A stretch of 64,000 nucleotides of DNA, taken from Oopsacas minuta (lineage: Eukaryota > Animalia > Porifera). The notes under the pieces were generated by a model. It had not been told where the DNA came from. It made no database searches and saw only the letters and a list, made by a program, of their open reading frames with translations. Location of the stretch: positions 1-64,000 of the forward strand of contig JAKMXF010000347.1 of the NCBI GenBank assembly GCA_024704765.1. Direction: 5' to 3'. Below are positions 9,001-39,911 of the stretch, one piece after another (position 1 is the stretch's first letter; every line of letters starts with the position of its first letter). Both the position numbers and the translations under genes were made by a program.

Positions 9001-12000
9001 GGGGTAAACTAGGACATAGAATTCGATTTTAACATTTTTCAATGTATAACAAGATTAGTATAATTCAATTTTATTTATTGAATTCTATCTATTTAATTGA
9101 TAAACACGATAAATACAGTTATGCGACAATTTCAAAATTGCATACCGTAAATCCTTTCCTTGACAACGGACAAACATACAAACAACAATTAAGATTTAAT
9201 AATACAGGTAAAAACTCCCAATATAATACAGTACAATTATTCTCTCAGTATTCTAGTCTTATATACAGAAAATCTAAAACAAACAATGAGATCTCTCTCC
9301 ATTAGGTTTTTAAACGGTATGTACCATTACTGTTTCTTTCCCAATTCTGACCCTTGAGCGGATAAGGTGCTATTATTCCATTTATAGCCGAGGCCAGCTG
9401 TAGCATGTTTTTCTTGACTGTACTCACAGAATCTGTATTCCTGTATATCTTCATATAATCATAGGTTTTCTGAAGATAGCCCCATCTAATCCTTCCTATT
9501 ACTACATATGCAGTTGTCTCGAATCCATCCCCTGGATCATCTGACCTATCTTGTGGACCAATAAACAAGTTGCCAGGTAGCCACGCTAAGAATTGCATGA
9601 AGTCTTCATAACCCTCCGGATATTGGGCTGTTGCATCATGTACAATCGTCCCCGCCTGAATTCCTTTAACTAGAGGTATTACGTTAGGATCTGTATCCAC
9701 ATCAGCTTGTGGGTACAGTTTTATATATTGTGTCCATACAGTACTCATTCCATTGCTTGTATGGTTACTATTCATTATTACTGAATTCCAGAATGTTCTA
9801 ATTGTACTCCAAGGATCGACATGGTGTCGAGCTGTATTTATATAATCATTACCCCCGCAAGGTGTCATCTGGGTTAAATTCTTATTATAACAAGGTAGTG
9901 TTGTTCTGTAAGGCGAATCAGGGCGACCATTGGATGGGTAATCTAGACGTACTCTCTGAGGGGCGTAAGTGGTATCTACCTGACATAAGGATAGGATGAG
10001 GAGACAAGAGGTGAGAAGGAGGTTCATTACTGTACACCTACAGTACAGATCAATAAAGTATTGTAATAAGAATACCGGTATAGGAGCACTTTCCTGGAGT
10101 ATTACCCTCTAACAAAGCTACAAATAGGCCTTTGTATGGTTAAATGGGTAAATGAGTCATGAGTCATGCTTTATGGATAATAACCCGCCAATTATTACAT
10201 GCACATACACTGGCAGGGCATTTTGAGTTGATAATGAGTTGAAACCTGAATGAGGCAACACAAATCAAGAATAAAGGTGTGGAAGTAGGAATATTATTTG
10301 CTCCAAGGATTATGAAATACAAAGGATATGATAGGAACAGCACCGTTACAATACAAAATAATGTGTTCTGACTAGTGAAATGCTTTGAAACAATTTTACG
10401 AGATCCCAGCTTTAGAGTGGATATTATTGGAAAGTTGTATAAACGATGAGAAAGCTGCCAACATGTGTAATATAGTATTCTGGTAGTAGAATTTGTTGCA
10501 TAAACTATCGGTAATGTTCGGATTGACGAGGGCCTACTGCAGGGGTTATTATTGTGCTTAGCATGTCATTACAGCAGCCATGATGATGGAAAAAAAGTGC
10601 TGAACATATGACTCAAATTAGTAGAGGGTCAATATCTGTATTATTGAATCTTAATTGTTGTTTGTGTATTTGTCTGTTGTCAAGGAAAGGATTTACGGTA
10701 TGCACTTTTGAAATTGTCGCATAACTTTATTAAGGAAGTAAATAGAATTCAATAAACTTCGCTAAATATATCGAACATGCTGAATCCGATTTTCACACTT
10801 TTGGATTAATTATATGTAAATTTATTGTTGTTTTTATGAATATAAAGTAAACAAATTATCCAAATCTCAAAATATACGTAGATAGTTGCTCTCAACGGCT
10901 ACAGAGGGGGTTAATCTTACAAAATATTTCAAAAATATATTCCATATACGTATATTTGTGATTTAAATTGTTCTAAATATATCTATATTATAATACTCAA
11001 AGGGGCCGTCAATTTGGAGAATAATAACACCTGGAGGCACAATGCGTCGAGTTCATCGCGAAGCGACGAGCCAAAGGCTCATATTTGTATATTTTTCCTT
11101 CAGCCGTGCCAGCAATAAATCAGTGAAAATGTGTTAAATTCATATCTACAGTTTAAGTTTAGTTATCCTGTGTGTTAATTGAGTAGAATACAATCAATGA
11201 AATATATTTATAAGCAGAAGTGTTAATTGAGATAATCATGTAAGCGATACTATTAAATACGTGAATGCCTCTTAGCATATCACATCAGCAACTGGGAGGA
11301 GTAAGATTGCGTACTCTCGTGAGCTGATATTACAATTAGAGAGCTCTTAGTTACATATTATGCAACGTATATGTAATATCAGGGATGTGAAGAACTTAGT
11401 ACTCTGTAATTGTCATCAAAGGATTGTGTACATAGAGACCTCCTCTCTTATCTGAACTGAATTGTTATTAGTAATATTTCAATTCAGATTAGAGAGGATA
11501 CAGTATTTGTGTATTACAACAGCGTTTATTAAATGCATATTTCGTATATTAGTATTTGAGAATGCAATCTGGAATAAATCAATCGATTACGGCTGAAGGT
11601 ATAAAATAAGAAAAATTATAAATTTACTAATCTTGTTAGACAATTATAAATGTTAAAATCTAATTCTCCGCTCCTGTTTACCCATTTTTAACAAGTGGAA
11701 GCTAATGTTTATGATAATTATCAAATGTTCACCAAAAAGTGTGAAAATATGATTAATCATATGATAAATCAGTGTATATACATTATCCTGAATAATAGAA
11801 TTACAGTCTCCATCAATACAAATACATTACAGAGCTAATTAAATTACAAACATTCCATCAGAACTAATTTATGAATTTATGTATAATTGTAAAACCTACA
11901 ATCTGATTGGGCTAAAATACAGAGGTGTGAAAAGGTGTGAAAATATACACATTAGAAATATTTCAAAATGTCAGACGCACAACTAGATGTCACTACGAGT

Positions 12001-18000: not shown

Positions 18001-21000
18001 ACTCTCTAGCTAGCTAGCTTTATATGCTAAAGACTCGGCTTAATAAGGACAGTTCAAACCAGGAGGCCATCTGAATTGAAAGGCAATTTAGTATTCATGA
18101 CGTCATAATGTTAACTTAATTAGTTACTCAACTTGAGTTACGTACATAGTCCATGATGAGACCAGTTAGCGGGCGAACCTTTGTTACATCAATCCTGGAC
18201 ACCAGAAATGTTTTCTCGCTCGCTCCCCGCTCGTCTAGAGAATCAATTCCTGACATATTTTAGTATGTATGTGAAAACTATTGTTTGAAATGTAATGACA
18301 TTTATGTCTGTCATGTTAATCAACAATATAATACTACAGAATTGCGAATTGATTGTCCAGACAGTCCCTGAGGTTGCCAGGTATGATAAGGCTCTTTGGA
18401 ACATGAAAATTTTGTAAATTTAACAATTATTGGTTATTGCAGGTGATTTTGTATTATCGGAAGCTACTTCAGACTAGAAGCGCCAGGTTCCAGTGTATTA
18501 CATTCATTGAGTATGCGGAATCAAATGCTAAACTAAGTAAGCAGAAGAGGTTACTAACGTCTAGTTAGGTTGAGTCATGTCATTCCCTCCAAATATTTAC
18601 AGAGGTACTCTCAGAGACAGGTGTCCTGAGAGGAATATTAGATAACATTAAAGAACTAAGCTAAAATTATAACGAGAATTAGACAATTGCACAGCCTACA
18701 AAACTAAAGCCAATCCACGGTATAGAATTTCATGGACCATGGGTTACTTCAAGTCTATTAAATTTGACTTTGGATTATATTTTTATCGATAAAACAAAAT
18801 CGGGGCATTTTGGCTCGAATAAATGTATTATTGATAGTTAATAAATTACAGAAGTCATATTATCCAACTATTTCCAGTTTGAAATGACGTCATCTGTTTG
18901 GTTAGAAGGGCAATATGTTGTTAAAAATGCACCATTTTTAACCTCTGATAAACGATCACTAGTGCGTCTTCGATTCCAGAATTAATATAAAGTGATTTAA
19001 GGATGTTTATACATGTAATGTAAAATTTTTGTAATTAGAAATTGTCACATAACTGAGTTATATTAGATACCATGGATGGCACTTATTTGGTAAAATCCCT
19101 TAATAACTCGATAATCGCTAGAGTTATTCTTAAATACTTATAATCAATATGTGCTATATACCCAAATTTCCATACCCTTGTAATACATTTTCATACGATA
19201 TCTCAAACCGGTGTGACATAATCGTGATTATGCCCATATTTGGTTATCAAGATTACGCAATGGTGTTTCAAGTTATCGTATGAAAATGTATTACAAGAGT
19301 ATAGGAAGTTTGGTATATTGTACATATTGGTTGGACTTATTTGATAATAACTCTAGCAACTATCGAGTTAAAAGTCGATATTGCCGAAATATGTGCCATC
19401 AATGGTACCTAATAACTCTTTATATATTATACGTATAAACATCCTTAGATCACTTGATATTAATTCTAGGATCGAAGACGCACTAGTAATCGTTTATCAG
19501 GGCATTAAAAGTGGTGCATTTTAACAACATATTGCCCTTCTAACCAAACAGATGACGTCATTTCAAACTAGTAATAGTTGGATAATATGACTTCTGTAAA
19601 TGTATTCATCGTGTTTATCAAGAAAATAGAATTAAAAAAAACTTCACTAAATATATCGAAAATGCTGAATCCGAATATGGTATTGTAAACAACATTTTGT
19701 GAATATTAGTTTACTTTCACGTACATAAAGTAAACAAAATTTAATATTATTGTAGAAATATGCTTTCAATGGTTATACTGAGATAATTGAGCATGCTGAG
19801 TCTGAATTAGATATTGTAAACAACAATTCATAAATATTTGTTCAATTTTGAGGTCATAAGTAAGCTGATTTAAAGATCATAGCAGCATCATGTTTGCTAC
19901 GGTTAAGATCATGAGTTTATGTACTCGATGGCCATACGAAATGTAGACACGAAGTGTTCGGAAACGGCGTATCGCGAGCAAGCAAACCGCGCTCGTATAG
20001 TAGAGATTATAATCCTTTAATTTTACAGGTAAGAGAGATTCTGTTTGATTGGCTACAGCTAGACAAGAAATGCGGGAAATCTCTTTACTTAACTCAGAAG
20101 CAGAGAGCTAAGAGTACTTCAGAACAGGTCCTAGAGTCTTTGAAGAGTACCCACCCTCTCCCCGGCCTAATTCTACAACACAGGAAGTTAAGTAAGCTCC
20201 TTTCCTTTCTACAGTCACTAATTCCTTTCATCATTAATCCTCAAAAGAGGCTGTACCCCTGCTGGCAACAGACTGGTGCTGCTACTGGTAGACTCAGTTG
20301 TAACAGTCCTAACCTACAAGTAATGTTCATTAGAGACACTAGAGATTAGAATGGGTGTTAGACAATAGTCAAGAACTCATACACTTGATTATCTAGGAAA
20401 TTCACTTCATATCCACAGAATTACGGCCACTGAGGGTCTGCAATTATTGTGGGTGTGGGTGGGTGTGTTTGTTTGTTTGTTGTTTGTCCACTTGTATTAT
20501 AATAATTAGGGGGAGATGATCTGCGTATATAATATAGTGAATAACATACATCCTTCTGTTGACGACATAGAAAAAATAATTACATTTGGATAATCGAGTA
20601 TGCTGATTTAATTTTCACACTATCGAATTAATCATATGCAAATTTATTTGTTGTTTTTATGAATATAAAGTAAACAAATAGTTGAAATCTCGAAATGAAC
20701 TTAGAGACTTGCTCACAACAGAGATATAGGGGTAATCAAGTACGCTGAATCCGAATTTCCCATTTTCAAGTTTCAATTGTAAATTTATTGTTGTTTTACG
20801 AATATAAAGTAAACAAATAGTTGAAATATGAAAATATACCTAGAGACTTGCTCTTATCGGTATGGATGGGTATCAAAGGATGCTGATTCCGAATTTCTCA
20901 CATTCAATTCTCTCTTATGCAAATTCTTTACTCTTTTTTGAAAATATAAAAGTAAACAAATAGTTGAAATCTTCATCTATTAATTCAATTTTGCAATTTA

Positions 21001-23815
21001 TACTATGCAAAATTTGAGGCACGAAGTGTCGAACCCTATGCGAACACAGTGTTCTCAAGCCGCGCAACGCGAGCAAGCAAAGCGACTGGTATATGCTAAT
21101 ATACTAAGTCAACCATTTTAGAACTGAGACACTATATTATGTAATTGTATTAGTTGGCACAGTAAAATTTCAATCGTAAATAGCATGAGTGTAAATCTGG
21201 ACATAAGCTTCAGGGCCGCATGGACATTTCCAGATGCCGGAAGGTTTACTATACCAATGACTAGCAGGTATGTGATTTGTATTTATATTCTGTATATAGG
21301 GAGTACCCAAGAAGAGCATACAAGTAGAAGGAGAGGACATAAACATCCGTAGCGTATTCACTAGTCGTAAGAACTATACTCTACTGTCAGTAGATTTCAG
21401 ATCTATAGAGCTTAGAATAGTTGCATTCCTATCTCAAGAAGAATCACTATGCAGCGTGTTTAACAGGAAACAAACAGAATCTGGTAAAGCGTTTTATACA
21501 AATACTTTCATTTCTTAAATTACAGAATCTCATACTGTACAATCCTCGATTTCTTTTCATTTATCCTGGCTACCGACGCAAGCATTGTGATCTAATTCCT
21601 CCCGATTTAACCGGATATCTCAGAGTTTACTTAAATATTTATTTTAATTTCTTACTTTATAACCCTCTGATTTGGTAGGTATTCTCCTGACTTCGTTTGT
21701 ATATGCGTCGTGAGCCATTAATCCAGAATTAATCTCTTTTATTCCTATATTTTACTTATTACAGATTTTCTTTAAGTCCAAAGACAAGCAAAAACGGTTA
21801 AGAATCACCTCATTTGTCAGTGTTAACTCAAAGGCTTTAAGGCAGTGGTTCTCAACCTGGGGTCCGTGGACTCCATAAAATGGATCAAAGAGGTCCGCGA
21901 AAGAAAAAAAGTTGAGAACCAATGCTCTAAGAAATTCACAGATTTTTCCTTTTTTCAGACCTATCCCCCTGGAAAAATAACATTTTGAGTGCCTCCCAGA
22001 GGAATCTATATGAAATACCTCACGAGGGTCCGGCCCTGGTTAGAACTCCAAATTTGGTGTTGCCTCTAAGTGTGACAGTATCGAACTAGGATAAGACATC
22101 GCTCTTCCCGAACTTAGAGTAATTACTATCCGAATAGGGTTTGAATGAAATGAACAGAAACGAATATTTATGTTTTCAGAGTATTACACATTTCTTATGT
22201 GTACTCTTGTCAAGTTTCGTTGGGTAACTAAAAAGCAATCCAATGATACTAGCATGAAGACAGCTTAGAGATAGCTATGCGCAAAATAATATTGTGTACA
22301 ATTGTTAAAATTACGAAATACTAGACCCACCCATTATTCTGCCCATTCTAGAAGATATGAGAGATGTGGTTGGAACTTCGAAATATATCTATTTTCAGTT
22401 AAATGTAGCATATTATATCAATGTATACTGTGTATAGAGATTCCTGAGATACAGAATGGCAGAGACATCTTCACAGAGCTAACAACACGATGGATAGGTA
22501 TACCATACGATACAGTAAGCATAACAGACAGAGAGACCACTAAACGAATGGTATATGGTGTAATATATGGAATAGGTCGAGATAAATTATCTGAGTATCT
22601 TATGGTGACACCACAAGAGGCTCAGGATAGGATAGATAATTTCACAAACACTTTTCCTAAAGTCAAACTATTCATGAATAATGTCAAGAAGATCTGTCAT
22701 AAGTATGGTTATGTTACAACTCTATTGAGAAGGAAGAGATTTTTACCTCATGTAACAGCTGGTAACATTCAAACTAGAATGTATGCAGAGAGACAAGCTG
22801 TTAACTTTGTTGTACAAGGTATAGTATTTGACAAACTTCCCTCCTTGTGTCATGTTTATTCACTCTTTTGTACAGTGGAAGCTGCTTAATCGGGAAAACT
22901 GAGAAGTCAATATTTTGTCCCGTTTAGGCGATTATTTAGATATTCAAGAGTATTTTTCGTGGTCTCTTAACCAGAAATATCTTAATCACCACTACTATAT
23001 ATCATTGCTATAGGGCCTAACAAAATGAGTCGTTGTACTATGCATATAATGTTAAGGTTACGTAAACTATGCAATTTCCTTGTTAGAAAAACAAATCTTT
23101 TACAAGTGATTCTGAATTTATATCTCGATTTCATTAAAAACTTTTGATACCCATAACTAGAATCGCTTAAATGGGATAGAAATCCTAATTAGCAATTATA
23201 CTTTTCAAATTTTCGTTTTATCTGGAATTCTGGATAGAAGTCCCAAGTATTAGCGATAATAATTTTCAAAATATTGGATAATCGGGATAAGAAATCCCGA
23301 TTAACCGATTCGATCTCCCAATTATCAGATGTTATTTGTATGTAAAATATCTGTCCCCAAAACATTGTCCCGTTTAAACGGTTTCCATTGTATTGCAAAA
23401 AGTATGGGATATCACACTTCGCATACCACCAGTCCGCCAATCTCCCCTGGCAACGTTAAGTAAGGTTTGAACTACAAATTTGGGTACTTTAGCTTGGATA
23501 TATAACACTGAATTATCCCTTACAGGTCTAGCAGCAGATCTGTGTAAAGTAGCTATGATTAAGCTATGCAATAGATTCAGTATAGAGACAGGACTTAATA
23601 CTAAGCTACTAGTACAGATACATGATGAGATATTATTCGAGGTAGCAGATCAACAGCTACAAGATACAGTGGATATTGTTTATGAGATATTAGAGAATGA
23701 TAGATTGTTGGAAGGATTTGTTGATTTTATTCTACCACTTGAGGTTAAGGTGTTAACAGGAAAGAGTTGGGGAATAATGCAAGAGATTGTGTATAAGAGA
23801 AAGGAGATGGATTAA
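1..23815 (+). CDS. POLN: DNA polymerase nu (family A), 5' partial, spliced; exons <1-540, 1056-1324, 2451-2752, 4345-4728, 20029-20319, 21300-21483, 22438-22818, 23526-23815
   Basis: All seven introns are GT-AG and the phases join in frame. The product has YFTLIFSDGSSQL, DVKVAGWLLDSD, FQLTSPAQVREILF, WQQTGAATGRLSCNSPNLQGVPK, motif A DFRSIELR, motif B DRETTKRMVYGVIYG, QAVNFVVQGLAADLCK and motif C VQIHDEILFEV. The DGSxQL block and NLQGV favour POLN over POLQ. Confidence 0.85.
2787..3348. mobile_element. Putative Tc1/mariner(pogo)-type MITE with imperfect TIRs
   Basis: Left end tacagtagatgccggatataagca and right end ttataaccggcatccggtatctgta form an imperfect inverted pair with TA at both ends. 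Confidence 0.4.
6743..8152 (+). CDS. MFS sugar-porter family transporter (SLC2A6/8, Tret1-like), intronless, nested in POLN intron 4
   Basis: The 469-aa ORF has about 12 hydrophobic segments and sugar-porter motifs GRVLTG, YMVEVC...RFYG, PQSPTWL (PESPxWL) and GWGTIAWTVYADIF. The likely start is the Met at 6782/6785. Confidence 0.85.
   Translation: MGYKYTIIKINVFMMADVSVESQPLIPARRIHYSKLRSYLIQFVSINALCLGYILYGWVISFTSPTESELMSIGLFNTLSFSLFSSLSLFGFSSFITSLFAKQWSCKFILMITTLCGGLGWILIIISNDIYSMILGRVLTGVHIGACMGLSMSYMVEVCNEKQQRFYGALILLPSAVALVFLYLLANYFSYRWLGVFGLIGIVLQAVLLMFSPQSPTWLLYMGFNLSAKETMIWIHGEDFDVEGEVKRIEQQISKSNEQNSYLSLSGFCRWKTIRPILIACSLQGFKGFSGQPVYYSYAASLFSRTSFNPDISALPYPILLSVGTLISVLLASHVSRKKILLVTTFMQAIANFTFFLYFMLSTHITVCTGSGSIPCVLLSIWPILSLCLYSLFYTIGWGTIAWTVYADIFDPNYKEVSAGIVTLFYALVMTCIVFIFPNFIASFGEWPFFLLLTLECVAGLCFEYFIFK
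8330..8545. repeat. Dispersed repeat, inverted copy of 44215-44480, containing the perfect palindrome aactggtcc-a-ggaccagtt
   Basis: Shared blocks seen as reverse complements or direct matches (atatactctggtataa, cgggtatattctggg, gtcggccataactggtccaggaccagtt). Confidence 0.65.
9060..9208 (-). mobile_element. 5' fragment of a non-autonomous Helitron-like family (same family as 10635-11090)
   Basis: Its reverse complement is near-identical to 10637-10757 (ctgtattattaaatcttaattgttgtttg...gtcaaggaaaggatttacggtatgca). Confidence 0.65.
9302..10027 (-). CDS. Secreted 241-aa protein of unknown family, possible HNH-like nuclease/toxin; intronless, nested in POLN intron 4
   Basis: Clean ORF with a hydrophobic signal peptide (MNLLLTSCLLILSLCQVDT), N-glycosylation sequons (NLT, NHT, NGT) and motif-like blocks ARHHVDPW, WLPGNLFIGP and RSDDPGDGFE. 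The function is inferred only. Confidence 0.7.
   Translation of the reverse strand: MNLLLTSCLLILSLCQVDTTYAPQRVRLDYPSNGRPDSPYRTTLPCYNKNLTQMTPCGGNDYINTARHHVDPWSTIRTFWNSVIMNSNHTSNGMSTVWTQYIKLYPQADVDTDPNVIPLVKGIQAGTIVHDATAQYPEGYEDFMQFLAWLPGNLFIGPQDRSDDPGDGFETTAYVVIGRIRWGYLQKTYDYMKIYRNTDSVSTVKKNMLQLASAINGIIAPYPLKGQNWERNSNGTYRLKT
10635..11090 (+). mobile_element. Non-autonomous Helitron-like element
   Basis: Starts a|TCtgtattatt, followed by a TG-rich tract. Internal subrepeats gctgaatccga..taaatttattgttgttttt recur at 19620-20003, 20436-21100 and 58679-59880. It ends with the GC hairpin gagcc-aaa-ggctc. Confidence 0.6.
12424..12736. mobile_element. Tc1/mariner(pogo/Tigger)-type MITE
   Basis: Ends are ta|cagtaaactccagttataacgaa and ttcgtattaacgaggtttcactg|ta. 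The same terminus occurs inverted at about 27820-27845. Confidence 0.55.
13424..16399 (-). CDS. FER: FER/FES-family non-receptor tyrosine kinase (F-BAR, SH2, kinase), intronless, nested antisense in POLN intron 4
   Basis: 991-aa ORF. It has an FCH/F-BAR helical region (AHNSYVLAL), an SH2 domain (WYFGEISRDEAEKLL..GDYLVRYS) and kinase motifs GKGNFG, VAIK, HRDLAARN, DFG and PIKWTAPE. FER versus FES cannot be resolved for an invertebrate co-orthologue. Confidence 0.92.
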   Translation of the reverse strand: MTTVTNPPVVPKKPPKGGVNMFGPHPSMVSVPTHSSPSIKPPSPSIKPPSNSALINPEITPLPDVVRVSSNCSEKPTKNSAPTNFPHKQGSFSKDNYFTTDMSSSDGLGYLDSNDPYLMQSVVPKNMLLPPTIEDRRSSLKKVEVNDFSPPEPNFGRSLAHKSGIDTISKMMEEEITYLRNWKRYLEDRTKIETTYYKTLQDLHEKHSINSPLSQPDIGRETFVTFPSFIDTSQQYIDTIAQSITTLNKETIPSILSLIKSKKSVKELYITQSRNLEKERHTYTRKMEESRRHYCDLHKEVDNAKSMYSTAMVRGAKQDKMKKSFLTKSREMVEAHNSYVLALRACDVYEQWHHESLLPVLLNTFQRILMLQTDYYSSFYDNLVTTLHQKLDPNSILIRQLIGLGGPLNGDVEYLQVIREKGEEPTRRTPLLYDKNLPKHQFIDILENQLIIQNREVTCKLKADLQLANEEHQRNKQSKHTELTYMDKAITSTQGGHKPISAYPFDINELCRNFASIMLEMQMESYKQDICLIQLKLVEGVLGATDGVDLDDNTILDRAFPQRAQHGRTMGSTASIDVSKNPIKRGGSFTESPRDKPPLVHRPTTPPEPMNPGRGTADIPIELEAWYFGEISRDEAEKLLLYDGDYLVRYSSGQKGFVISTKFKGATKHFVVKKENGLYMFNKQGFLSIRCLLEHQQAEKQPLIGEFYLIRAITREGDKWEITEKDLDIMDRIGKGNFGYVYKGYMRSRGSHVAIKMCKSDALTDQDEFLREAEILKQYRHHNIVEFIGVSQQAESIYIIMELMSGGDFLTFLRNKSIREKKYILSNMILDVAGGMDYLSSKDCVHRDLAARNCLIGEGKCVKISDFGMSRQLSEGEYQMSTVNKPLPIKWTAPEALHKGLYTCQSDVWSYGILLWETFSSGSTPYPGMDSKTAIEKLETGYRLPAPSGTPQPIYAMMLQCWEYNPQTRPRFSEIHSTLKSISHDLRAKNI
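18849..19596. mobile_element. Foldback-type non-autonomous DNA transposon, ~750 bp, with ~350-bp imperfect inverted arms
   Basis: Left cagaagtcatattatccaactat...gaaatgacgtcatctgtttggttagaagggcaatatgttgtt is mirrored by aacaacatattgcccttctaaccaaacagatgacgtcatttc...gataatatgacttctg. Flanks are taaatta and taaatgt. Confidence 0.85.
19620..20003 (+). mobile_element. Degraded copy of the non-autonomous Helitron-like family
   Basis: aacttcactaaatatatcgaaaatgctgaatccga matches 10756-10790; a GC-rich 3' end gcgagcaagcaaaccgcgctcgtatagt is present. Confidence 0.5.
20436..21100 (+). mobile_element. Copy of the non-autonomous Helitron-like family with three internal tandem subrepeats
   Basis: Three copies of gctga(a/t)tccgaattt...aaattt..ttgtt....gaatataaagtaaacaaatagttgaaat, a TG-rich 5' part and a GC-rich 3' part. 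Confidence 0.55.
21843..21924. mobile_element. hAT (Charlie-like) mini-MITE
   Basis: TIRs cagtggttctcaac / gttgagaaccaatg with a degenerate 8-bp TSD (ctttaagg / ctctaaga). Related copies lie at 27846-27929 and about 61647-61802. Confidence 0.7.
22873..23390. mobile_element. Tc1/mariner-type MITE in POLN intron 7
   Basis: Ends are ta|cagtggaagctgcttaatcggga and tgtcccgtttaaacggtttccattg|ta. The ttaatcggga motif recurs at about 1485, 1775 and 17244. Confidence 0.6.
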
Positions 23816-25990: not shown

Positions 25991-28900
25991 TTCCTTGTAT
26001 GTATATTTCGTTTAGAAGTATATGTGTAATACTAATAGTATTCTTGCTTTTATGTTGTATCCTGAGAAATTACTATGTTTATTAATGATAATTGTTGCTT
26101 ACTATACTTGGTAATTATTGTGGTATTCAGATTAATAATTATTGTATATTTCCTGTTTATTTTCAAAGGTTTTTCATGTGACAAATTTGTAACCGATATG
26201 AGTCTGCACTTGTGTGTGCTTCATAGTTCATATAATTGTAAACCAAGAAAATGTGTAAATACTAAGGACCTGTCATTAACAAATGTTCTATGCAAAATTG
26301 AAGATTGGCTACCCTTAGTTACAGTTGTGAAACAAGTCAATGTAGAATATACCTCAAGAGATAGCAACTTGCTAAAACTACAAAATCAATGGAATGTTGC
26401 TACCCTAATGAGTGTTTATTTGAATCCTTTGATCATTTCGTAGAAAAGATAGTAGTTATCCTATTGAGCTTCATGTTAGATTAGTCGTGTATATATAAGA
26501 AGGTAAATTGGACAAAATTCAAACTATGTTATGAAATTAAGTTTAGAAACAGTCAACTCCTGTTATATCTAAGCTCAAGGAACCGTGATAATTCCTCCGA
26601 TATAACCGATGGAATGTTTGTTACTTTAACGGTTTGGGACCATATTTGTACAATTTCACACTTCTATATAAGCGGGTATTTCTATATGCCCAAGTTCAAC
26701 ATAACAGGAATTGTGTTCATATTTTAACTGTAGCAATAATCTTATAAAGAATATTAGGTAATATTACTAAACTATAAACCTAACAACAGCATTACACAAT
26801 TGGAATTTAAATTAGTCAATGAGAATAATTGTTATGATTAATATATCGTAAGAATTTGCCATATCATATTGACAACAGAGCTTTGGCTAGAGAAATACGC
26901 AAAATTGTTGATTATTGTTTCAAAATGTATTGAGTATAGGTTTTACAGTTTCTGCTCTACCGCCCGCATCAAGTTTACCTGTCACATGAATATTGTCATT
27001 ATTTCACCATTTTATCACTGAAATTCACTTTACAATATATTTACTAACTAACAGGTGAATAGTAGTAACAGACCTCTTTTGACACGCTTAACTAACATAT
27101 TTAGAAGTAGAATCATTGAAATATTTCCATGAATTGGACACTTTGTATCATGATGACGTCATAACATAATGAGACATGAAATGCCATTAGATAGACATCA
27201 TGTGGAGCTGAAACAAGTTTCACATTAACAAATGCATTTTAACAGCGATAATGACCTCCACCAAAAGGACAAGCTCCGTATCAAAATTCACAAAAAACAT
27301 TCATTCTAAACAAATAATAAATATTACGTCATAACAGCACGATAACATTCTAATCAAATTGTCAGAGAGTTAATAAATAGAAATTGTGTATTCATTTCTA
27401 TGAATAATTCAATTATCATTTATTGTGCTTTGTTTTCTAACAACTTGAAACCAAAATTGAATGATTATTACGTCATCTAATATCACAATTAGTTACAGTC
27501 AAAAGGTGTTAGAAACAATCCCAATGGAACTCAATTTCTGCAGGACAATACAGATAATAATATACACAATGAATAAATATAAACACAAATATTATAAGAC
27601 ATGCAATCTCGATCATCGAACTCGTTTGGACATGTGACAGGTTCGGATTATCAAGGTTGTGTATTGCACCAATTTTCATATAAACTATGAAATATCTGTT
27701 GAGTCCGCCTATTAGCGAATCGTACAGTAAACTTCTGTTACAAGCAAGCAAGCAGCTATAGCTTCAAAATAATATATTCCACTCCGCTTACAACCAAATG
27801 AAATCATCCACGCGGGGGGCACTTCGTTATAACTGGAGTGTATTGCAGAGGTTCACAACCTAGGGATCAAGGACAGCTTGGCGGTACACGGATGACAGCA
27901 GGGGATTCACGGATGAGTGAACACCACTGAAATACTGATTAATCATATGAAACTACCTGAAATATTGAAGTGTGAAGATTCACTATCTGGTATTTCTTTT
28001 GAAGCCATTTGATTCAAATAATAGCAAACAAAATATATTAGAATTAACCAAATTCAAAATATCAGAAAAAATCGAGAAATTAGAAAATACTTTCGATGTC
28101 ATTAGTTAGACCGAGAGGTGAATTGAATAATATTCGAATGAGCTATTTCACACCTAATTTCAGTGTTCATAAAATTCAGTTTAGAAACAGTCAACTCCTG
28201 TTATATCTATACTTGAAACCTATGTGATTTTCACATGGCAGCTGTATGTTGGGACTTCTCGAGTGGGCTCATCTCGAAATCTGTTTATATTAGCAAAAGA
28301 TGGCAAAACTGCTAACATTGTATATCCACTTGCCTTACAATAATTCATATACAAACACATATATTATCCCGTGAATGCATATAATCTCATCAAATTTCTA
28401 TATCAATGATCAATACTTACGAGTATCGTATATAGAGTTTACAAATTAGATATTACACCTAAATCTGAAAAACAACCTGAAAGACGTGTTAGAATTTACT
28501 GAGACTCAATACAACAAATTAGAATTTCAAGACCGAAATAGCCTTATTATGCAAGAGATAAGTAACGCTTAAGCAATGTACTACCAGATAAGCTTAAATA
28601 TACAAGTGATTAAGAAAATCTAATAAAATAGACGCCTGAAAGGTGAGTTAGGAAATATTATACAAACTACTACTAGGTAGATAAACCACCAAGAGCATAG
28701 AAACATTCAGCACATAAATACTTGCGCAGGAACTGCGTGAAAACCCGCCCTTAGTGTAAATACAGTAATCGAAGCTCAATTTATATAAAACCTAATAAAG
28801 TACATTAGTATAAATAATACTAATACCTCACCTACAAATGAATAACTACACTGAAGAATTGACAAAATGCAATGTTGTACCATCCATGACAAACACTTAA

Positions 28901-28998
28901 ACGAATGCAGAATAGCAATGTAATAGGTTATTTGATTGTTCACTGAGAGCTATTACATGTGGACGCGTAGCGTTCGCGAATTCCAAAAGACAATCGTC

Positions 28999-29072
28999 AG
29001 GGCCGAAGGCCCTAAAAACCATTCAGCAGGAACTAGCAGAAAAAGCCGCCCAGAGGGCGGCGTTACGGCTAA
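28999..29072 (+). terminator. Two GC hairpins followed by CTRR, candidate Helitron 3' terminus
   Basis: Hairpins agggcc-gaa-ggccct (28999-29013) and gccgccc-aga-gggcggc (29045-29061) are followed by ctaa|t at 29069-29072. Confidence 0.45.
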
Positions 29073-29460
29073 TTATTTATGAGTTAGTATTTGAATTTGT
29101 CTAACTCCCTATGACGTAGGATATATATGCATCTCGTCACAGAAGTACTGGGTCTAAATGCCTTTATCGGAGTGACTATGTCTTGCCTATCTTTTAATGG
29201 AAACATATTTCTTACTTTTGGAATTCCCTTTCGTCCCGTTTTTCTTCTTAAATCAGGTGGCTTTATCTTAATTATAGGAGACACTATCTGTTTATCATTG
29301 TATAATGCCTCAGGTATACTATGCTGTCGGACAGTTTCGAGTTTGTACGCAACATAAAGAAATTAAAAGAAAGTATTTATACAAACACACACACAAATAT
29401 ATATACACACACATCTATATAATACAGCTTAATAACTTCTCCCTGAATCAGCTATTCACA

Positions 29461-30171
29461 CTATTTTAGAGGTCTAAGCAGTACACAATCAAACCAAAGA
29501 TTATCTTGCCAATTCGGCACCAAACTCATGAACCTTGAGTGGATTTTCCCATAACTTTCCATCTTTATACACCCAGTGGACACTTCAACCCATTTCTGCA
29601 AATTCTCCTCTTGATACTGGTATATTTTTCCAAGAGCTATTTCTTGTTTGCCCTCTATAGTGTAGAATATATCTGCATTCGGTACGGGACTTGGATAATC
29701 CATTTTGTCTTGTTTTATACGCCAAACAACTTCATAATTTCCTGGGAATACATTTTTAAAACAAACTCCATTTTCCAAATGGCAGACTGTTATTAAGTAC
29801 AGCGGTTTTTGAGAGAGAGTCCCTTCAGTCTGTCCGTCACTTTTATAGTAACGAGGATCATTGACCCATGCTCCACCTATTTCTACACCCGTCACCATCC
29901 TACTCCTCTTCAACAGTTGCCAATAGGCCCTCTTGTAGCAGTCCGGTTTTATCTCAATAACGAATTTATTTATTTTCTCCTGAGAGAATACTTCATGACA
30001 CAATTTCTTCCATAAATGTTGTAGTAGTGCATCATAGTGTAAGCAGGTCAGAGAGAAGTTTAATAGATCTTTGAATCCATTTGCGTGACAGAGAACGTAA
30101 CGAGCTAGAACCTCTGTTATCTCAATTGAAAATATGAAGGGAGGAAAATCTTTTGAATTCACTTCTGCCAT
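29461..30171 (-). CDS. F-box protein with a C-terminal PP2 (phloem protein 2)-type lectin domain, intronless
   Basis: The N-terminus is F-box-like (FSIEITEVLARYV...DLLNFSLTCLHYDALLQHLWKKLC). The C-terminus carries PP2 signature blocks in order: AWVNDPRYY, VCHLE, PGNYEVVWRIK, WVEVSTG and WQDNLWFDCVLLRPLK-stop. Confidence 0.7.
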   Translation of the reverse strand: MAEVNSKDFPPFIFSIEITEVLARYVLCHANGFKDLLNFSLTCLHYDALLQHLWKKLCHEVFSQEKINKFVIEIKPDCYKRAYWQLLKRSRMVTGVEIGGAWVNDPRYYKSDGQTEGTLSQKPLYLITVCHLENGVCFKNVFPGNYEVVWRIKQDKMDYPSPVPNADIFYTIEGKQEIALGKIYQYQEENLQKWVEVSTGCIKMESYGKIHSRFMSLVPNWQDNLWFDCVLLRPLK

Positions 30172-30908
30172 TTTGTAATTCTACTACATAATTCTTGTAT
30201 TTATAGTATTGGGTTGCAATTTGCAAATAAGTGTTAAAACAGGCTTAATTAATTACAACAGGAATTATGCAAATAATTAGCATTTGTATAAGCCAAAAAT
30301 GTTTATGAAATATTTAATATTATAATTATGTTTACGTATAAGTTGTTCAATCTTATAATCTTATTTTTAAATTCTAAATTTCTTTGTTTGGCTGTTATTA
30401 TCTGTTTCAACTTGTGCGGACAGAATTCTATCGATATCATCATCCAAATCCTTATCAGTCTCTTCTACATCTGATAGATCATTTTATGAACTTTTCTTAA
30501 CGGTCTCATCTTCTTTTATCTTTTCCTCTTCCACCCATTTGCTTATTTCTTCATGAGACTTCTCTCTCAGAGATTTTAGGTCCACCACTAGACACGATAT
30601 TGTCTGAGGTTCAGGCAGATTTGTTGTAATGTTTATATCCGAGTTGTCAGAGGTGTGAAATGCTGTAAGTGATAAAGTGGTCTTATTATTGTCCATATTG
30701 CTAGCCATCTTATTAATAATATAATCATAATTGAATTATCATTTACCAAAGCTCTCACTATTCCCCAAGATGATAACATAAAATGGGTCAGAGGATGTAC
30801 AGCGAGTTAATAATTGAAACAGACAACATAGGTTGTGTCGTGGCCAACAGTTGTGTGTATATCAATAGAAACAAGTGAATAATAATTATCCTCCATAAAA
30901 ATCTGTAT

Positions 30909-31545
30909 CTAAATTAGGTATTTATGGACAGCGTATCCAGCTATGAATACAATAGACTGTAGAGTATTTACAGCTGTATCAATATCATCACTTGTATTCA
31001 GTTGTGTTAGATAAGATTCCAAGTTAAGAGAAGTACTGATTTGATTATTGGATACAGTTCTTTCGCTGATGATCTGGAGCAAGGAATTTGTCGAACAATA
31101 GTGGACCATTTCTCGCAGAGACTTGAAACCATTATCGCGAAACCAGTTTTCGCAGGATAATCTGGTTGCATAGATGCCCCGATTATCTTACCACCCTTAT
31201 AAGTATACTCAGATTTTACATGAACCTCATCCATCTGCATAATTACACACCGTTCCATATAATTGAAGTATATTATTGATTGTTGAAGAAAGCATGTAAA
31301 GCATGTAAATTCACTGTCTAAACCTATGTTAGAGTATAATCGTTGAAGAGTTGAGTGATGAGGTAAAGAAATACAGTCCAGAGATTGAAGATATCGGTAG
31401 CATGCTGGCAAAATTAACTGAGATTTAAGTGCCAACACAAGAGTGATAAGATTGTACCTTCGGTGATTTTTGTGTACTAGAAGGTTTTCTAATTGGTTGA
31501 TGGTGAATTGTAGATGAGGTGTGCTGTCGAGCTTGAAGTATTTGA
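30909..31545 (-). pseudogene. P-element/THAP9-type transposase, internally deleted
   Basis: LQFTINQLENL..HRRYN..LALKS...LPHHSTLQRLYS...MDEVHVKSEYTYKGGKIIG..AKTGFAIMVSSL is joined directly to the C-terminal VFIAGYAVHKYL block. The central catalytic region is absent. Confidence 0.8.
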
Positions 31546-31967: not shown

Positions 31968-32129
31968 TTAATTACTATCTATCAATAATAATGAGTAGCG
32001 CATGCGCTGCATTAGGATTGTTGGTAAGTCATATTTATAGATATGCGTCATCATTCCAACCATAGTTACCCAAACTGTTGAATTGAATGTGATTAGATAA
32101 GTTTCGAAACCACATTACGACAAGTGGTC

Positions 32130-34700
32130 ATTGGAATGCTGGTGCATTTATAATGTATGGAAGTAGATATATAAATTTATACCATTCGTTAGATAATTTC
32201 ATTTTGGAAATTGCTGAAAAAGAAACTTCACAAACTGGATCTGATAATATATACCCCAAAAAACGAATAATCTCGGAGAAAGAAGATATCAGCTTCATCA
32301 CATTAGACATCGACAAAGTATGCCTATCAGAAGGTGAATCATTTCAATTGATAGAATCAGATGTACCAACATGGTCAAAACCAGCTGATAATTATATTCC
32401 TAATTCCTTATGCTTTCAAGCAAACTTTAGTTGCTTGTTGATTCAATATAATTTTTCAGATAAGTCAGTGTCAACCTGATTGCTTCTCAGAACCCGAAAT
32501 GAAACAAGTAGAGATGCCTATAATTGACCAGTATGTAAAACTATTGATATTGAAGTCTCACATATATAAGTTAGAGGATAGTGAATATGTTATAATTGCA
32601 GATTATGATCACTCACTACGTTATTATCACTATTCTGTTTGCATGTTTGTCTCTCTGCTCCGGTTCGTAGGGCCCAACACCTTTATTTCGGTTAAGCCGG
32701 TCAAATGGCCTGGTCCTAAGTGACCCTATTAATCGGAGTCTACCGTACATTTACTATTCTCACTACCAAAACTAAACATTATGTATTTCAAGGAACCGTT
32801 GTACTAAACAAAAGGAGAATCATAATTGAAACAAACAGCAATCTATGCGCCAATTGTTATAGTGATACTTGTTCTCATTATCAAGCATTTGAACTCTGTT
32901 CATAAAATGATTGTTTGCAAGTTTGTGAAGCAAACATTCTAGAAGACATAATATATTATTTCCCAAGTCCTAACGATATCTTTCTGTTGACAGATGATAC
33001 TTTTCACAACTTCAAATTGAATAATGATAGGTGGTTATGTTGTTCTTGTTCTTCAAAGTGCAAACAACATTCCAGACTCCATAATATTCTCGAAAATACT
33101 GGATCAAATACACAGAAAAAGTTTGAATATAACACGATATCAACAAGAGCAATACCAACAATCTAGATGAAAGCCAAATAGCAATTTACAACCATCAGCT
33201 CTGCCATGGCATCAATTTACCTTTAAATATGTATCCTGAAGAGAAATTATGTGACTATGGTTTCAAATTCAATGAAGAGGAGAAGCTTAAACTAGAGAAG
33301 GTTGGAATAGTTATCTATTTAGAAAATGATATTAATGAACTCAAAGATTACAAAAGTATATATTTATCATCAATGAACCATTCGCTCGGTCTCAATTTTG
33401 ATTTAGTATGGTGGGTTATTCTACGTATTTAGCCGTTGAAAACAAGTCTTTGCAATTATAAAGGAATTTCAATAAATATTTGGTCTCATATAAGATTGTT
33501 CATTCGATTGCAATCAACTCGTCCCAATTTACCTCCTCCCTAAATTTGCCTGTGCTTGGTAACTCAGTAATTATATTGTAAGTATATAGTTTACAGTTCA
33601 AGATTCAGTGGAACTTGCAATTGCTTGGCAGTCTTCGAAGGTCAGAACAGTTTACTGTTAAACATCAACAACAAGTACTTTGTTCATTACAGTTTGTTAT
33701 ATGATTATAGCGAGTTGATGACCATGTCTAGAAATACTTTGTACGGTTACTTGAGGTATGTATTGTTTAAATAATATTCTTGATAAATTAAAATTCCTAT
33801 ATACATACAATCTAATTCTTCGTTTTACTCTTTAGTGCCAAGAACAGGAAGATTATCAGAATGGGTAGACGAATACATTCCATTATCACATTGTTTATCA
33901 GGCATGGAACGCCTATCTAAGAACAGAAGACATAGATTATGACTCGAACTACATATGTTCAAAGTGTAAAGATCATCCCGATGTGATAATTTTAGATGGC
34001 ATAGCGATGGGAACAATGAAATCGGTACCAGAAGTGGATGCAAAATTCGATCAGGATCAGCAATACCCTATGATCCCATTTTCAGATCGTGTTTTTATCC
34101 CCGACACAGCAATTAGAAAGCAACTCCTTAAATACTGTTCTGAAGGTTTGACAGAAAATACACTAACAGACCTATTGAAGTCTATTCATAAAGAAATGGC
34201 TGATTATATTTTATTTAGTTCCATTAGGACAGAAAATTTAGTGACTATAAGTGAAGAATATATACACGTTAGGAAAGTCTTAAAACTCTTTTGCCATACA
34301 GATCCAATATCAGGAGTATTCCAATTCTCTCTGCTGGAACCGAATGAACGAAAAGCAATAGCTCTTCTTGCCAATGGAAAATCAGCAAGTGAAGATTCCT
34401 TAACAGTATACGTCATAACCATTTTGTATTTATCTTTGAAATGCTACAACTTTTCAAGTTATATACATTATCTATAGAAATTTGAACCACTTCAAGTACA
34501 TTGTGCCCTGTTCGATTTCTCCCAAATTTTAGCATATCAGATTTCAACTATAGTAGAAATAACATAACACTCAAACCCAATATTTGAAATCCTACATCAT
34601 CTTACCTCAGCCAATATTTGAGTAAAATATTCACCCAAGACTTTTTCTTATACTCCAGATTGTGTATACAACTTTGGCGAATATATATTACATTATAACA
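32130..34700 (+). pseudogene. Degraded KDZ (Kyakuja-Dileera-Zisupton)/HMGXB3-like transposase
   Basis: Broken ORFs contain a SWIM-like CANCYSDTCSH, CCSCSSKCKQH, CxC-type GTCNCLAVFEGQNSLLLNINN (about 33608) and YQAWNAYLRTEDIDY..YICSKCKDHPDVIILDGIAMG (about 33895-34015). Confidence 0.65.
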
Positions 34701-37701: not shown

Positions 37702-39911
37702 CTAATCCTCCATTGGAACGTTACGGAACAAATAAGACATAGATTCACCGAAATGAATCCTACGAATAGCTTCACTCAACAACAAGCTAACATCCACAAC
37801 TTTAATTTTATCGCACTTGGCTTGATGCTCAAACTGAGGTAGAGTATTAGTGACAATAATTTCGTCTATCAGAGAGGCTTGCAACTTCTCAGGAGAGTTG
37901 GCTGACATAATCCCGTGTGTTCCCACGACAATAACTCTGACGGCTCCTTTCTCACGAAGCAGTGCGGCAGCTGCGACTACAGAGTCCACTTCGTCGAGAT
38001 GGTCATCTATCAGGATAGCGGTCTTACCCTCTACATTACCAATCAGTGTGAGTGGGAGCAGCTGCTTGTCTAGAACGACCCTGCTTGAGAATATTCTCTT
38101 AGGGGGAGAAGCAAACAAAGTAATAGGAGGAGGACTGGAGCGACCGTCTACCATATCATGTGCTTCTGCCATGATGTTTAGATGTCCGTGAATAACTGCA
38201 ATACGAGTACCGAGACGCTCTGCGTAAGAAGAAGCACGCTTGGTGACATTGGGGTTTCTAGCAACAACCACTGACTCAGAAATAATGAGGTTCACCTAAA
38301 AATGAAAGTTTGAGAAATATTCCAAAGACTAATCGCTGATAAATTCATGATTGAAAATAAAAGATATAATAAGGGTCAATTTAAATTATCGTAAATTTAT
38401 AAGCACTTAAGCAAGTTATAATCAAAGAAAAATTATTCCAGAGAAGTTGAAATTAGAATTAGTAAATTTAGTATATGAGTAATAATGAGATATTTCTAAC
38501 ATAGAGAGAGTGTTTTGGATATAAGAAATGTTAGTTCGGTAGATGCTCTGTACCTGTCAGATTTAATTCACCATATAATTATAGTGGTGATTACTGCCTT
38601 ACGCAATCTAATTACGTAATTCAGTATTCACTGAATATGTAACAAAATATCAAATTCAAAAGATTTGGATATATTTACAAAATTAAATATGTAAGAATTA
38701 ATACACTATTTAGTAAAATATCTGATATTTAATATACCTACAGAAGTAAGCATTTATCTAAAAAGTCAACTACGTATCTGTAATGTTCAGATTACGTACG
38801 TGCATGTTACTTAATGTAACTGAAAAGGAATAAACTGAAATACAAACGAGATCTTGTTAATAGATTGTTTAATTAAGAGGGTTTCTAGCTAGCAACCTAT
38901 CTAGTCACGTGAATCATTGGGTAACTGGGGGAATAGGGATGACTAACTAGTAACAGAGGTTGCTGGTTAGAAAACTCTTCGTGTAAATATTAGTGGAATA
39001 AAACTTAGTGTAACAAGTACAAATTTATAGCTTTACTACTTACGTAGTTAGGGCTCACAATCCCGAGATCCCAATCGATTTCACCTTCAGGATTGAATCC
39101 CGGATTTGATTTTTTAATCCCGATCCCGATTTTCAATACAGGGATTCCGACACTAGTAGTAAATTACACAACCGAAGTAAAATAATGCAACATTTTTTCT
39201 TATTTACAGGATTTTAACTATGTCTATTAGAAATATAATAACTCTCGTTATTACCATGTCAGATATAAGAACTCTCCTTATAAAAAGTGATTCTTTACAC
39301 CCTATAAAGGTGAAACTCCGTGAAAGTAATTGATCCTTTTTTCCATGGAATTTGGTCACCAACTGAGTCTATGATATGATATTTTAGCAACAAGAACAGC
39401 ACAGTATTACCTGCTCACTGAGATACTGTATGAGGAAGGGAGAACATCTGAGATTATCTACAGGTACAGAGAAGAACCCTTGCACCTCTCTATCTCTGAG
39501 ATCACTAGTGATGAGGTGAGTAAGTCCTGCCTTACACATCATGCTAGCGACTAGCTTTGCAGGAATAGAGCTCCTCTTCCTCATCTTAGACTGTAGAGCG
39601 TAGTGTAGACAAGGGACTACCCCGATTATACGTCTAGCTCCTGCTGTCTTAGAGGCATAGCAGAGCATCAGTAGCTCCATTAGAGAGTCATTAATGTTAC
39701 CAGAAGCTGTCTGTAAGATGAACACGTCTTTACCATTGAGAGAATGAGGGATATGATCGATCAGAGTTTCTCCAGTATCCTGTATACTTGCTTCTACTAT
39801 AGTGACAGGATGTCCGATACGCTTAGCTATGCGGTTAGATAGCTCTGGATGAGAGGACCCCTCTAGTAAGATGAAAGAGTGAGGACGAGACTCATCAGAG
39901 AAACGTAGCAT
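37702..39911 (-). CDS. PRPSAP: Phosphoribosyl pyrophosphate synthase-associated protein (non-catalytic PAP39/41 type); exons 39911-39411 and 38295-37702, ~364 aa
   Basis: PRPS fold motifs GSSHPELS, DSLMELL, KMRKRSSIPAKLVASMM, VQGFF and THG..S, ending SMSYLFRNVPMED. A phase-0 GT-AG intron gives YLSEQ|VNLII. Catalytic motifs are degenerate (DLRDREVQ, VARNP, IDDHLDE). Confidence 0.9.

Follow-up and report, generated by a model that had tools for sequence, protein, structure and literature searches.

The glass sponge Oopsacas minuta carries a genuine nuclear gene, here called F-box-PP2, in which a PP2/Nictaba-type domain is joined to what is probably a divergent F-box. The gene consists of a single exon, is a recent duplicate under constraint, and encodes a likely glycan-sensing substrate receptor of an SCF ubiquitin ligase, a combined reading that we consider reasonably probable and within which the identity of the gene, its fold, the conservation of the family, the history of duplication and the selective constraint have been shown. 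The F-box-Nictaba architecture itself is known; what is new is its animal (glass-sponge) lineage, which is undescribed.

The gene and its genomic surroundings

The window, by which we mean the whole 64 kb stretch of DNA analysed, is the first part of a 197 kb contig (JAKMXF010000347.1, assembly GCA_024704765.1) of O. minuta (Hexactinellida). At 29461-30171 on the minus strand, the ORF list contains an uninterrupted ORF of 236 aa with an ATG start and a TAG stop, which is the longest in the surrounding 20 kb, a region of 35% GC (range 32-41%). The assembly has an annotated gene at these coordinates (29461..30171, minus strand; 236 aa plus TAG, single exon, complete), and the protein on record for the contig is identical, so that the intact, intronless frame of the original prediction is confirmed. 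The second-best database match, at 83% identity, is 'hypothetical protein LOD99_12983 [Oopsacas minuta]'.

Read data were examined as Logan contigs of four runs from one sample, whose library types are unlabelled; three of the runs look like DNA, and in these the ORF and its unique flanks are covered contiguously at an even depth of ~40-100. Since the closest characterised relatives of the protein are plant proteins, the ORF might be suspected of being contaminating DNA in the assembly, or an insertion that came recently from a plant or alga. This explanation is vanishingly improbable, because the ORF lies within a 197 kb sponge contig and is contiguous with its flanks in the three DNA-like runs, because a paralogue and syntenic orthologues are present in other glass sponges, and because identity to any non-sponge protein is only ~20%. 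Contamination of the Oopsacas assembly is excluded by the host genes on the contig, the even read depth and the glass-sponge orthologues, and the reads, which the original prediction had named as a possible source of doubt, give no sign of it.

The original prediction had placed the gene in a transposon graveyard, between a Helitron relic and a P-transposase relic, and this description holds only in part. A 143-aa ORF at 31007-31438 (minus strand), beside the duplicated segment described below, appears to be a transposase relic, with a borderline match (24.1 bits against a cut-off of 24.6) to the TNP-like RNase H N-terminal domain of P-element/THAP9-type transposases, and high-copy repeats lie at ~27200-28130, 28883-29069 and 32000-32800, where contig depth in the DNA-like runs is in the thousands, as against ~40-100 in unique sequence. 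A Pfam scan of 18 neighbouring ORFs, however, found no Helitron helicase or Rep domain, and normal host genes lie 6-8 kb off on either side, namely a family-A DNA polymerase gene (exons at 19954-23815, plus strand) and a ribose-phosphate pyrophosphokinase (PRPS) gene (exons at 37702-39911, minus strand), both being called genes. Several 'skip' joints among the repeats (e.g. 28342 to 28935) may reflect polymorphic insertions or variants within a repeat family. No terminal inverted repeats bracketing the duplicated segment were found, and capture of this segment by a transposon is not supported.

Domain architecture and predicted fold

The C-terminal part of the protein (~aa 92-236; 29464..29898, minus strand) is a PP2/Nictaba-type jelly-roll domain according to Pfam PP2, VIA-align and Foldseek. 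The Pfam PP2 model (PF14299) matches aa 98-234 with 26.9 bits, above its gathering cut-off of 25, along profile positions 11-148 of 148, and it also matches six of eight sponge family members (best E 5.8e-8). The blocks AW..DPRYY, VC.LEN, W.E..TG and W....WFDCV.L.P, by which the domain had originally been recognised, are indeed present in the ORF and are conserved both within the sponge family and in more distant relatives.

An AlphaFold2 model based on only eight sponge sequences was unusable (pLDDT 56), and the prediction was repeated with 22 aligned sequences, giving a pLDDT of 84.7 overall and >90 over most of the PP2 domain. In the resulting model, three helices at the N-terminus are followed by two helices of the linker and by a beta-sandwich. 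Searched with Foldseek, the model has Nictaba (8ad2) and Cus17 (7yaq), a PP2 lectin of cucumber, as its top PDB matches (E 1.5e-9), so that both the profile match and the structural match expected of a PP2 domain were found. VIA-align likewise aligns it with Cus17 (7vub; Z 17.2, rmsd 2.3 Å, 138 residues), with hinokiresinol synthase, a non-lectin enzyme of PP2 fold (Z 17.1), and with tobacco Nictaba (8ad2; Z 15.6), whereas the next fold class, the CBMs, reaches a Z of at most 12.5, which is 3 to 4.5 Z units lower than the PP2-fold structures. In a shape search of the ESM Atlas, the top match was a rotifer F-box-PP2 cluster, followed by plant PP2. No match to PDB sequences was obtained with the window protein by single-sequence phmmer. 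The sole PDB match of a sponge-only profile was staphylococcal superantigen-like protein 3 (E 0.004, query 142-220), which was taken as a chance match of beta-strands because the structure search ranks PP2 structures first and lists no such fold.

The N-terminus of the protein (~aa 13-61; 29989..30135, minus strand), with model helices at 16-28, 32-40 and 44-61, is probably a divergent F-box homologous to the F-boxes of the relatives, as Pfam, hhalign and AlphaFold2 together suggest; this assignment is supported at the level of the family. Taken as a single sequence, the window protein scores 12.8 bits with the Pfam F-box-like model, under the cut-off of 24.3, and has sub-threshold F-box-like and Elongin_A matches at aa 22-88. 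The F-box-like model is matched by all eight sponge members scanned at E up to 1 (best 2.3e-4; none shown above the cut-off). Family-level evidence is provided by hhalign, in which the sponge N-termini align over 79 columns with the N-terminal regions of eight relatives (probability 97.6%, E 2.6e-12), five of these relatives passing the Pfam F-box cut-offs and the other three, from ichthyosporeans, lying outside that scan. Furthermore, the full-length sponge profile aligns to P0021, P0023 and P0028, which are relatives with bona fide F-boxes. The usual Leu-Pro start of the F-box is replaced by Phe-Ser or Phe-Thr in most sponge members, and the sponge-only profile found no F-box protein among solved structures. 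Between the F-box and the lectin fold, AlphaFold2 and hhalign place a helical linker (~aa 62-91, helices 64-74 and 79-90; 29899..29988, minus strand), and the linker region of the sponge proteins aligns in hhalign with the post-F-box region of the relatives. The F-box plus PP2/Nictaba-fold architecture originally proposed is therefore upheld, with the PP2 domain above its Pfam cut-off and the F-box recognised by profile evidence from the family.

A conserved glass-sponge family

A word search recovered seven further full-length relatives of 242-255 aa with 49-83% identity to the window protein, and one more sponge member, P0018, came from the exhaustive profile search. The orthologues from glass sponges outside Oopsacas, including one from a Vazella transcript, are 49-68% identical to the window protein and single-exon, and the sponge family as a whole is single-exon because every sponge F-box-PP2 gene is a single ORF.

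The closest of these relatives, the Oopsacas paralogue P0002 (83% amino acid identity to the window copy), lies on a contig of 1.06 Mb at a locus whose gene order is common to P0002, P0003 and P0004, the latter two from two other glass-sponge assemblies. In this order, Snf7, an RBR ligase, a kinase, a small (CD225-like) gene and a ~115-aa gene precede F-box-PP2, which is followed by SAM50/Omp85, an MFS transporter, a kinesin-DEP-ankyrin gene and tektin. The family is conserved across Hexactinellida at this fixed chromosomal neighbourhood, and the between-species dN/dS of F-box-PP2 in glass sponges is 0.11-0.26. It also duplicates repeatedly: another glass-sponge assembly (locus L010) contains a tandem pair at 7208-7948 and 10001-10738 with 73% amino acid identity, an internally deleted tandem copy, P0010, is found at 8770-9213 of locus L003, and the window copy is a dispersed duplicate. 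The window gene, once pictured as a lone gene stranded among transposons, is actually a duplicate of a gene at a conserved glass-sponge locus.

The family is transcribed in Vazella, where a Trinity transcript of Vazella pourtalesii encodes a complete F-box-PP2 orthologue. For the window copy itself, transcription is only hinted at by the fourth Oopsacas run, in which ORF contigs are 220-307 deep as compared with 0-60 in the unique flanks, a depth pattern that fits RNA and falls short of proof for this copy. In two runs, 29603-29918 is represented only by a variant that carries 11-12 differences and is 3-4 times as deep as unique sequence, and in another run, the one of uneven depth, a contig over 29914-30171 has 6 differences and diverges just upstream of the ATG. 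These variants may represent an allele, or else a third copy, nearly identical and missing from the assembly.

Duplication and constraint of the window copy

In blastn, positions 29070..30725 of the window (minus strand) match 9433-11722 of L001, the syntenic locus, in three collinear pieces of 87%, 83% and 75% identity. This duplicate of ~1.7 kb starts 17 bp before the small neighbour gene, stops shortly before SAM50 and has a gap of ~530 bp in its downstream part relative to L001. Because 30725-29070 is collinear with L001 9433-11722 including the upstream region, the window copy arose by segmental duplication at the DNA level and is not a retrocopy. A CA/TA-rich simple sequence at 29371-29424 starts about 40 bp past the stop codon, where the ~530 bp homology gap falls.

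The duplicate includes an upstream intergenic region (30172..30483, minus strand) that aligns to L001 9798-10000, the 25 nt preceding the ATG included, and that presumably contains the promoter and 5′ UTR of the F-box-PP2 gene. The ~115-aa neighbour gene was duplicated as well (30367..30708, minus strand); its alignment partners are L001 9450-9797, L003 8288-8632 and L005 9146-9496. The window copy retains 92% DNA identity, yet an in-frame premature stop after codon 74 cuts it to 74 aa, and read-through translation shows that the frame goes on beyond this stop. This gene, which has a Lys-rich patch and an acidic tail and matches no Pfam family, lies directly upstream of F-box-PP2 on the same strand in three glass-sponge assemblies, and it may be a functional partner of F-box-PP2 or just a neighbour.

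The window copy has clearly been kept under purifying selection since the duplication, because its coding sequence is 92% identical to that of the syntenic copy and the co-duplicated intergenic sequence only 78%. In full, the two paralogues share 92.0% identity over the CDS, 77.9% over the intergenic region and 83.8% downstream (Fisher p 3e-7 for CDS vs intergenic), and the CDS contains one in-frame indel of 18 nt, whereas the intergenic sequence has 7 gap events within about 200 bp. Constraint is also indicated by a synonymous excess between the paralogues (p 0.03; dS 0.14), although their dN/dS of 0.53 is relaxed against the 0.11-0.26 observed between species. This ratio is one of the reasons for asking whether the window copy could be a recent redundant duplicate on its way to becoming a pseudogene, whose open frame merely reflects its youth; others are its site outside the ancestral locus in repeat-rich DNA adjoining a transposase relic, the premature stop already present in the co-duplicated neighbour gene, and a 6-codon N-terminal deletion relative to the syntenic copy. 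Such decay is improbable, however, since the coding sequence has diverged by 8% and the co-duplicated non-coding sequence by 22%, and no indel shifts the frame. When 58 random substitutions (the observed count, 8% divergence) were simulated, the ORF stayed open in only 5% of trials, and it would do so less often still at the intergenic rate of 22%. In the trees, moreover, the terminal branch leading to the window copy is shorter than the one leading to its Oopsacas paralogue. Constraint thus remains the preferred explanation for the intact frame.

Distant relatives and origin of the family

Relatives outside sponges are remote. An exhaustive profile search of 1.84 billion representative proteins (E up to 1e-3) yielded 53 proteins, the best non-sponge match having an E of 2e-17 and ~20% identity, and the identified non-sponge relatives are 15-24% identical to the window protein. 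Ten of the closest matches were scanned with Pfam, and PP2 was found in all ten, accompanied by an F-box in seven. The identified sources of the matches are the bdelloid rotifer Didymodactylos carnosus, the green algae Myrmecia bisecta and Klebsormidium nitens, the ichthyosporeans Ichthyophonus, Amoebidium and Creolimax, and a cluster with the blastoclad fungus Paraphysoderma. One further contig is assigned to an animal because laminin-G and fibronectin-III exons adjoin the relative that it encodes. The language-model neighbours of the window protein are rotifer F-box-PP2 clusters, and a word-index search with mixed alignment gave no further relatives. The original prediction, in which the architecture was of plant type and not standard in animals, is right that it is unusual for an animal, but the architecture is not confined to plants, being found also in rotifers, on the animal contig, in ichthyosporeans, in a blastoclad fungus and in green algae. 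The alga-like contig L008, which encodes the distant PP2 relative P0078 (15539-16441), also contains a large ORF for a primase-helicase (D5_N, AEP_C962R, PriCT_2) of a type characteristic of giant viruses; this may be an integrated viral element.

Trees were calculated from a full set of 51 rows of at least 180 aa and from a reduced set of 18 rows, all with an identified taxon. All nine sponge sequences group together with 100/100 support, the stem of their clade measuring 1.6-2.1 substitutions per site, and neither the 51-row nor the 18-row tree contains a supported sister of this clade. AU tests reject none of the three topologies compared, which are animal monophyly (p 0.30), holozoan monophyly (p 0.10) and sponge-plus-green-algae (p 0.15). 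The phylogeny proposed at the outset as a check has thus established the unity of the sponge sequences and leaves their sister group without support.

The gene had been suggested to be either horizontally acquired or a cryptic ancient one. A recent horizontal transfer from plants is excluded by the ~20% identity to non-sponge proteins, the long stem and the conservation throughout Hexactinellida; of the two older scenarios, ancient inheritance with losses and old transfer, the trees leave both standing. Ancient inheritance is favoured because holozoan protists share the architecture and because the sponge locus is conserved. It is also the scenario proposed, with many losses, in a lectin survey of 2019, in which the domain had three metazoan matches (PMC6362431). 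An old horizontal transfer into the glass-sponge lineage from a green alga, another protist or a symbiont would explain that scarcity in the survey, the patchy distribution in animals (hexactinellids, rotifers and one animal contig among the 53 profile matches) and the single-exon structure of all sponge genes, and it agrees with the passing sponge-plus-green-algae clade. We regard such a transfer as unlikely, because the identified relatives share only 15-24% identity with the sponge protein and the sponge stem lacks a supported sister, because the architecture is common to three ichthyosporeans, which are unicellular relatives of animals, because animal and holozoan monophyly pass the AU test likewise, and because the gene occupies a conserved syntenic locus among ordinary animal genes.

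The sugar-binding site

The primary site of Nictaba consists of Thr14, Trp15, Tyr21, Val39, Ala40, Trp41, Asp148, Lys149 and Trp151, with Trp15 and Trp41 as its key residues and with several contacts made by backbone atoms; two of its four hydrogen bonds, the pair that the authors connect with GlcNAc specificity, come from the backbone of Ala40 and Trp41 (PMC11632377). When this site was mapped onto the window protein through an HMM profile and a MAFFT family alignment, without a superposed ligand, four of the six side chains compared were found to be kept, the equivalents of Trp15, Tyr21, Val39 and Trp151 being W102, Y108/Y109, V129 and W221, and the other two were changed (Ala40 to Cys130 and Trp41 to His131). 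Within the sponge family, the Trp41 position is Trp in five members and His in the window copy and three others, Cys also occurring, and the Trp15 equivalent is His in P0008 and P0018.

Glycan binding by the PP2 domain is therefore plausible from the residues conserved, though not assured. The protein could instead be an SCF adaptor whose PP2 domain reads a protein or a small-molecule ligand and no longer binds sugars, a reading that we consider rather unlikely yet deserving of real weight. The replacement of the sugar-stacking Trp41 by His in the window copy and its variability in the family, together with the His at the Trp15 position in P0008 and P0018, would agree with it, as would the use of the PP2 fold by an enzyme, hinokiresinol synthase. 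On the other hand, most of the compared side chains are kept, the hydrogen bonds made by the backbone at the Ala40 and Trp41 positions are independent of side chains, and histidine is also capable of stacking on sugars, so that a sugar ligand continues to be preferred.

Proposed function and significance

A recent duplication at the DNA level (synonymous divergence about 0.14) carried the gene, its upstream region and the small neighbour gene into repeat-rich DNA, where the F-box-PP2 copy has been retained under purifying selection. Its product is predicted to be a small cytosolic protein composed of the divergent F-box, the helical linker and the C-terminal PP2/Nictaba-type jelly roll. The F-box would dock on SKP1, making the protein the substrate receptor of an SCF ubiquitin ligase, and the PP2 domain would select the targets, probably cytosol-exposed glycans containing GlcNAc or LacNAc. 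SKP1 binding, glycan binding and target ubiquitination are suggested here by the homologous F-box-Nictaba proteins of plants and by the analogous FBXO2/6/27/44 of mammals; on these grounds a role as an SCF substrate receptor is most likely, and this receptor probably senses glycans. Selection of targets through their glycans has been demonstrated for the mammalian Fbs proteins, and the F-box-Nictaba proteins of plants are proposed to work likewise (PMC6389600).

The plant F-box-Nictaba proteins (AtPP2-B type, e.g. At2g02360; NpPP2-B10) have the same domain order and a similar size (about 240-300 aa), and both they and the sponge protein pass the Pfam PP2 model. Because both lack a signal peptide, a nucleocytoplasmic location is expected for both. 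The sponge protein differs in its more divergent F-box, its His at the Trp41 position and its glass-sponge host, and the identity of plant PP2 to the sponge model, for which only the solved Nictaba and Cus17 lectin domains were aligned, is 11-16%. Nictaba (8ad2) and Cus17 (7vs6, 7yaq, 7vwb) share the jelly roll (Z 15.6-17.2, rmsd 2.3-2.6 Å, about 139 residues) and the equivalents of Trp15, Tyr21, Val39 and Trp151; they are stand-alone lectin domains without an F-box, whereas the sponge copy has an F-box as well as His for Trp41 and Cys for Ala40.

The rotifer (D. carnosus CAF0761029.1) and ichthyosporean homologues have the same architecture and are the nearest clusters to the sponge protein by language-model features and predicted structure. 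The rotifer proteins exceed the sponge protein in length by about 90-100 aa, F-box and PP2 being separated by a long insert, and their F-boxes are canonical. Neither group has a supported sister relationship to the sponge clade, and all of these homologues are uncharacterised. In the literature searched, there is no characterised F-box-PP2 protein from any animal, papers on PP2/Nictaba being almost all on plants by title, and in the Oopsacas genome paper the term 'F-box' is used solely in annotating its archaeal symbiont. The protein was originally taken as a candidate for an undescribed system; it belongs rather to a known family, in view of the occurrence of the architecture in rotifers, ichthyosporeans, a fungus and green algae. 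That the family might already be widespread and described in invertebrates is borne out for its presence in rotifers, but not, in the literature searched, for the characterisation of an animal member.

The parallel with FBXO2/6 drawn in the original prediction is reasonable. FBXO2/Fbs1, FBXO6/Fbs2, FBXO27 and FBXO44/FBG3 have the same layout of F-box, linker and beta-sandwich as the sponge protein and are SCF receptors for cytosol-exposed glycans, and whole-length Foldseek alignments of the sponge model with Skp1-bound Fbs1, Fbs2 and FBG3 span 269-282 columns. The superposition on 2e31, 3wso and 8zuh is poor (TM 0.33-0.44, rmsd 9-12 Å), however, and PP2 structures fit far better. The recognition domain of the mammalian proteins belongs to the FBA family and that of the sponge protein is PP2; no FBA match to the window protein was found by Pfam at E up to 10. 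Membership in the FBA-type F-box family is therefore rejected, and in its lectin part the FBXO2/6 type is an analogue of the sponge protein and not a homologue.

A broader proposal, which we advance tentatively and regard as unlikely, is that F-box-PP2 is a cytosolic ubiquitin ligase receptor for glycan surveillance that dates back to ancestral eukaryotes, or at least to ancestral holozoans, and that was retained in glass sponges, rotifers and ichthyosporeans and lost in most animals. If this were true, F-box-PP2 would fill the job of FBA-type FBXO2/6/27 in the syncytial glass sponges, where it would mark glycans that are exposed to the cytosol on misfolded glycoproteins, on ruptured endomembranes or on invading microbes, and the repeated tandem and dispersed duplications would reflect an immune or stress role.

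For the study of lectin and ubiquitin evolution and for catalogues of sponge innate-immunity genes, the finding is incremental and provides no new mechanism. F-box-Nictaba proteins have been treated as a plant speciality, with the mammalian FBA-type proteins as their animal counterpart (PMC6389600, PMC6362431). The constrained, syntenic family of glass sponges, with its relatives in rotifers and ichthyosporeans, alters this view, the distribution of the architecture across eukaryotes being wide but patchy, and it offers an animal system for studying whether glycan-directed ubiquitination in the cytosol had one origin or several.
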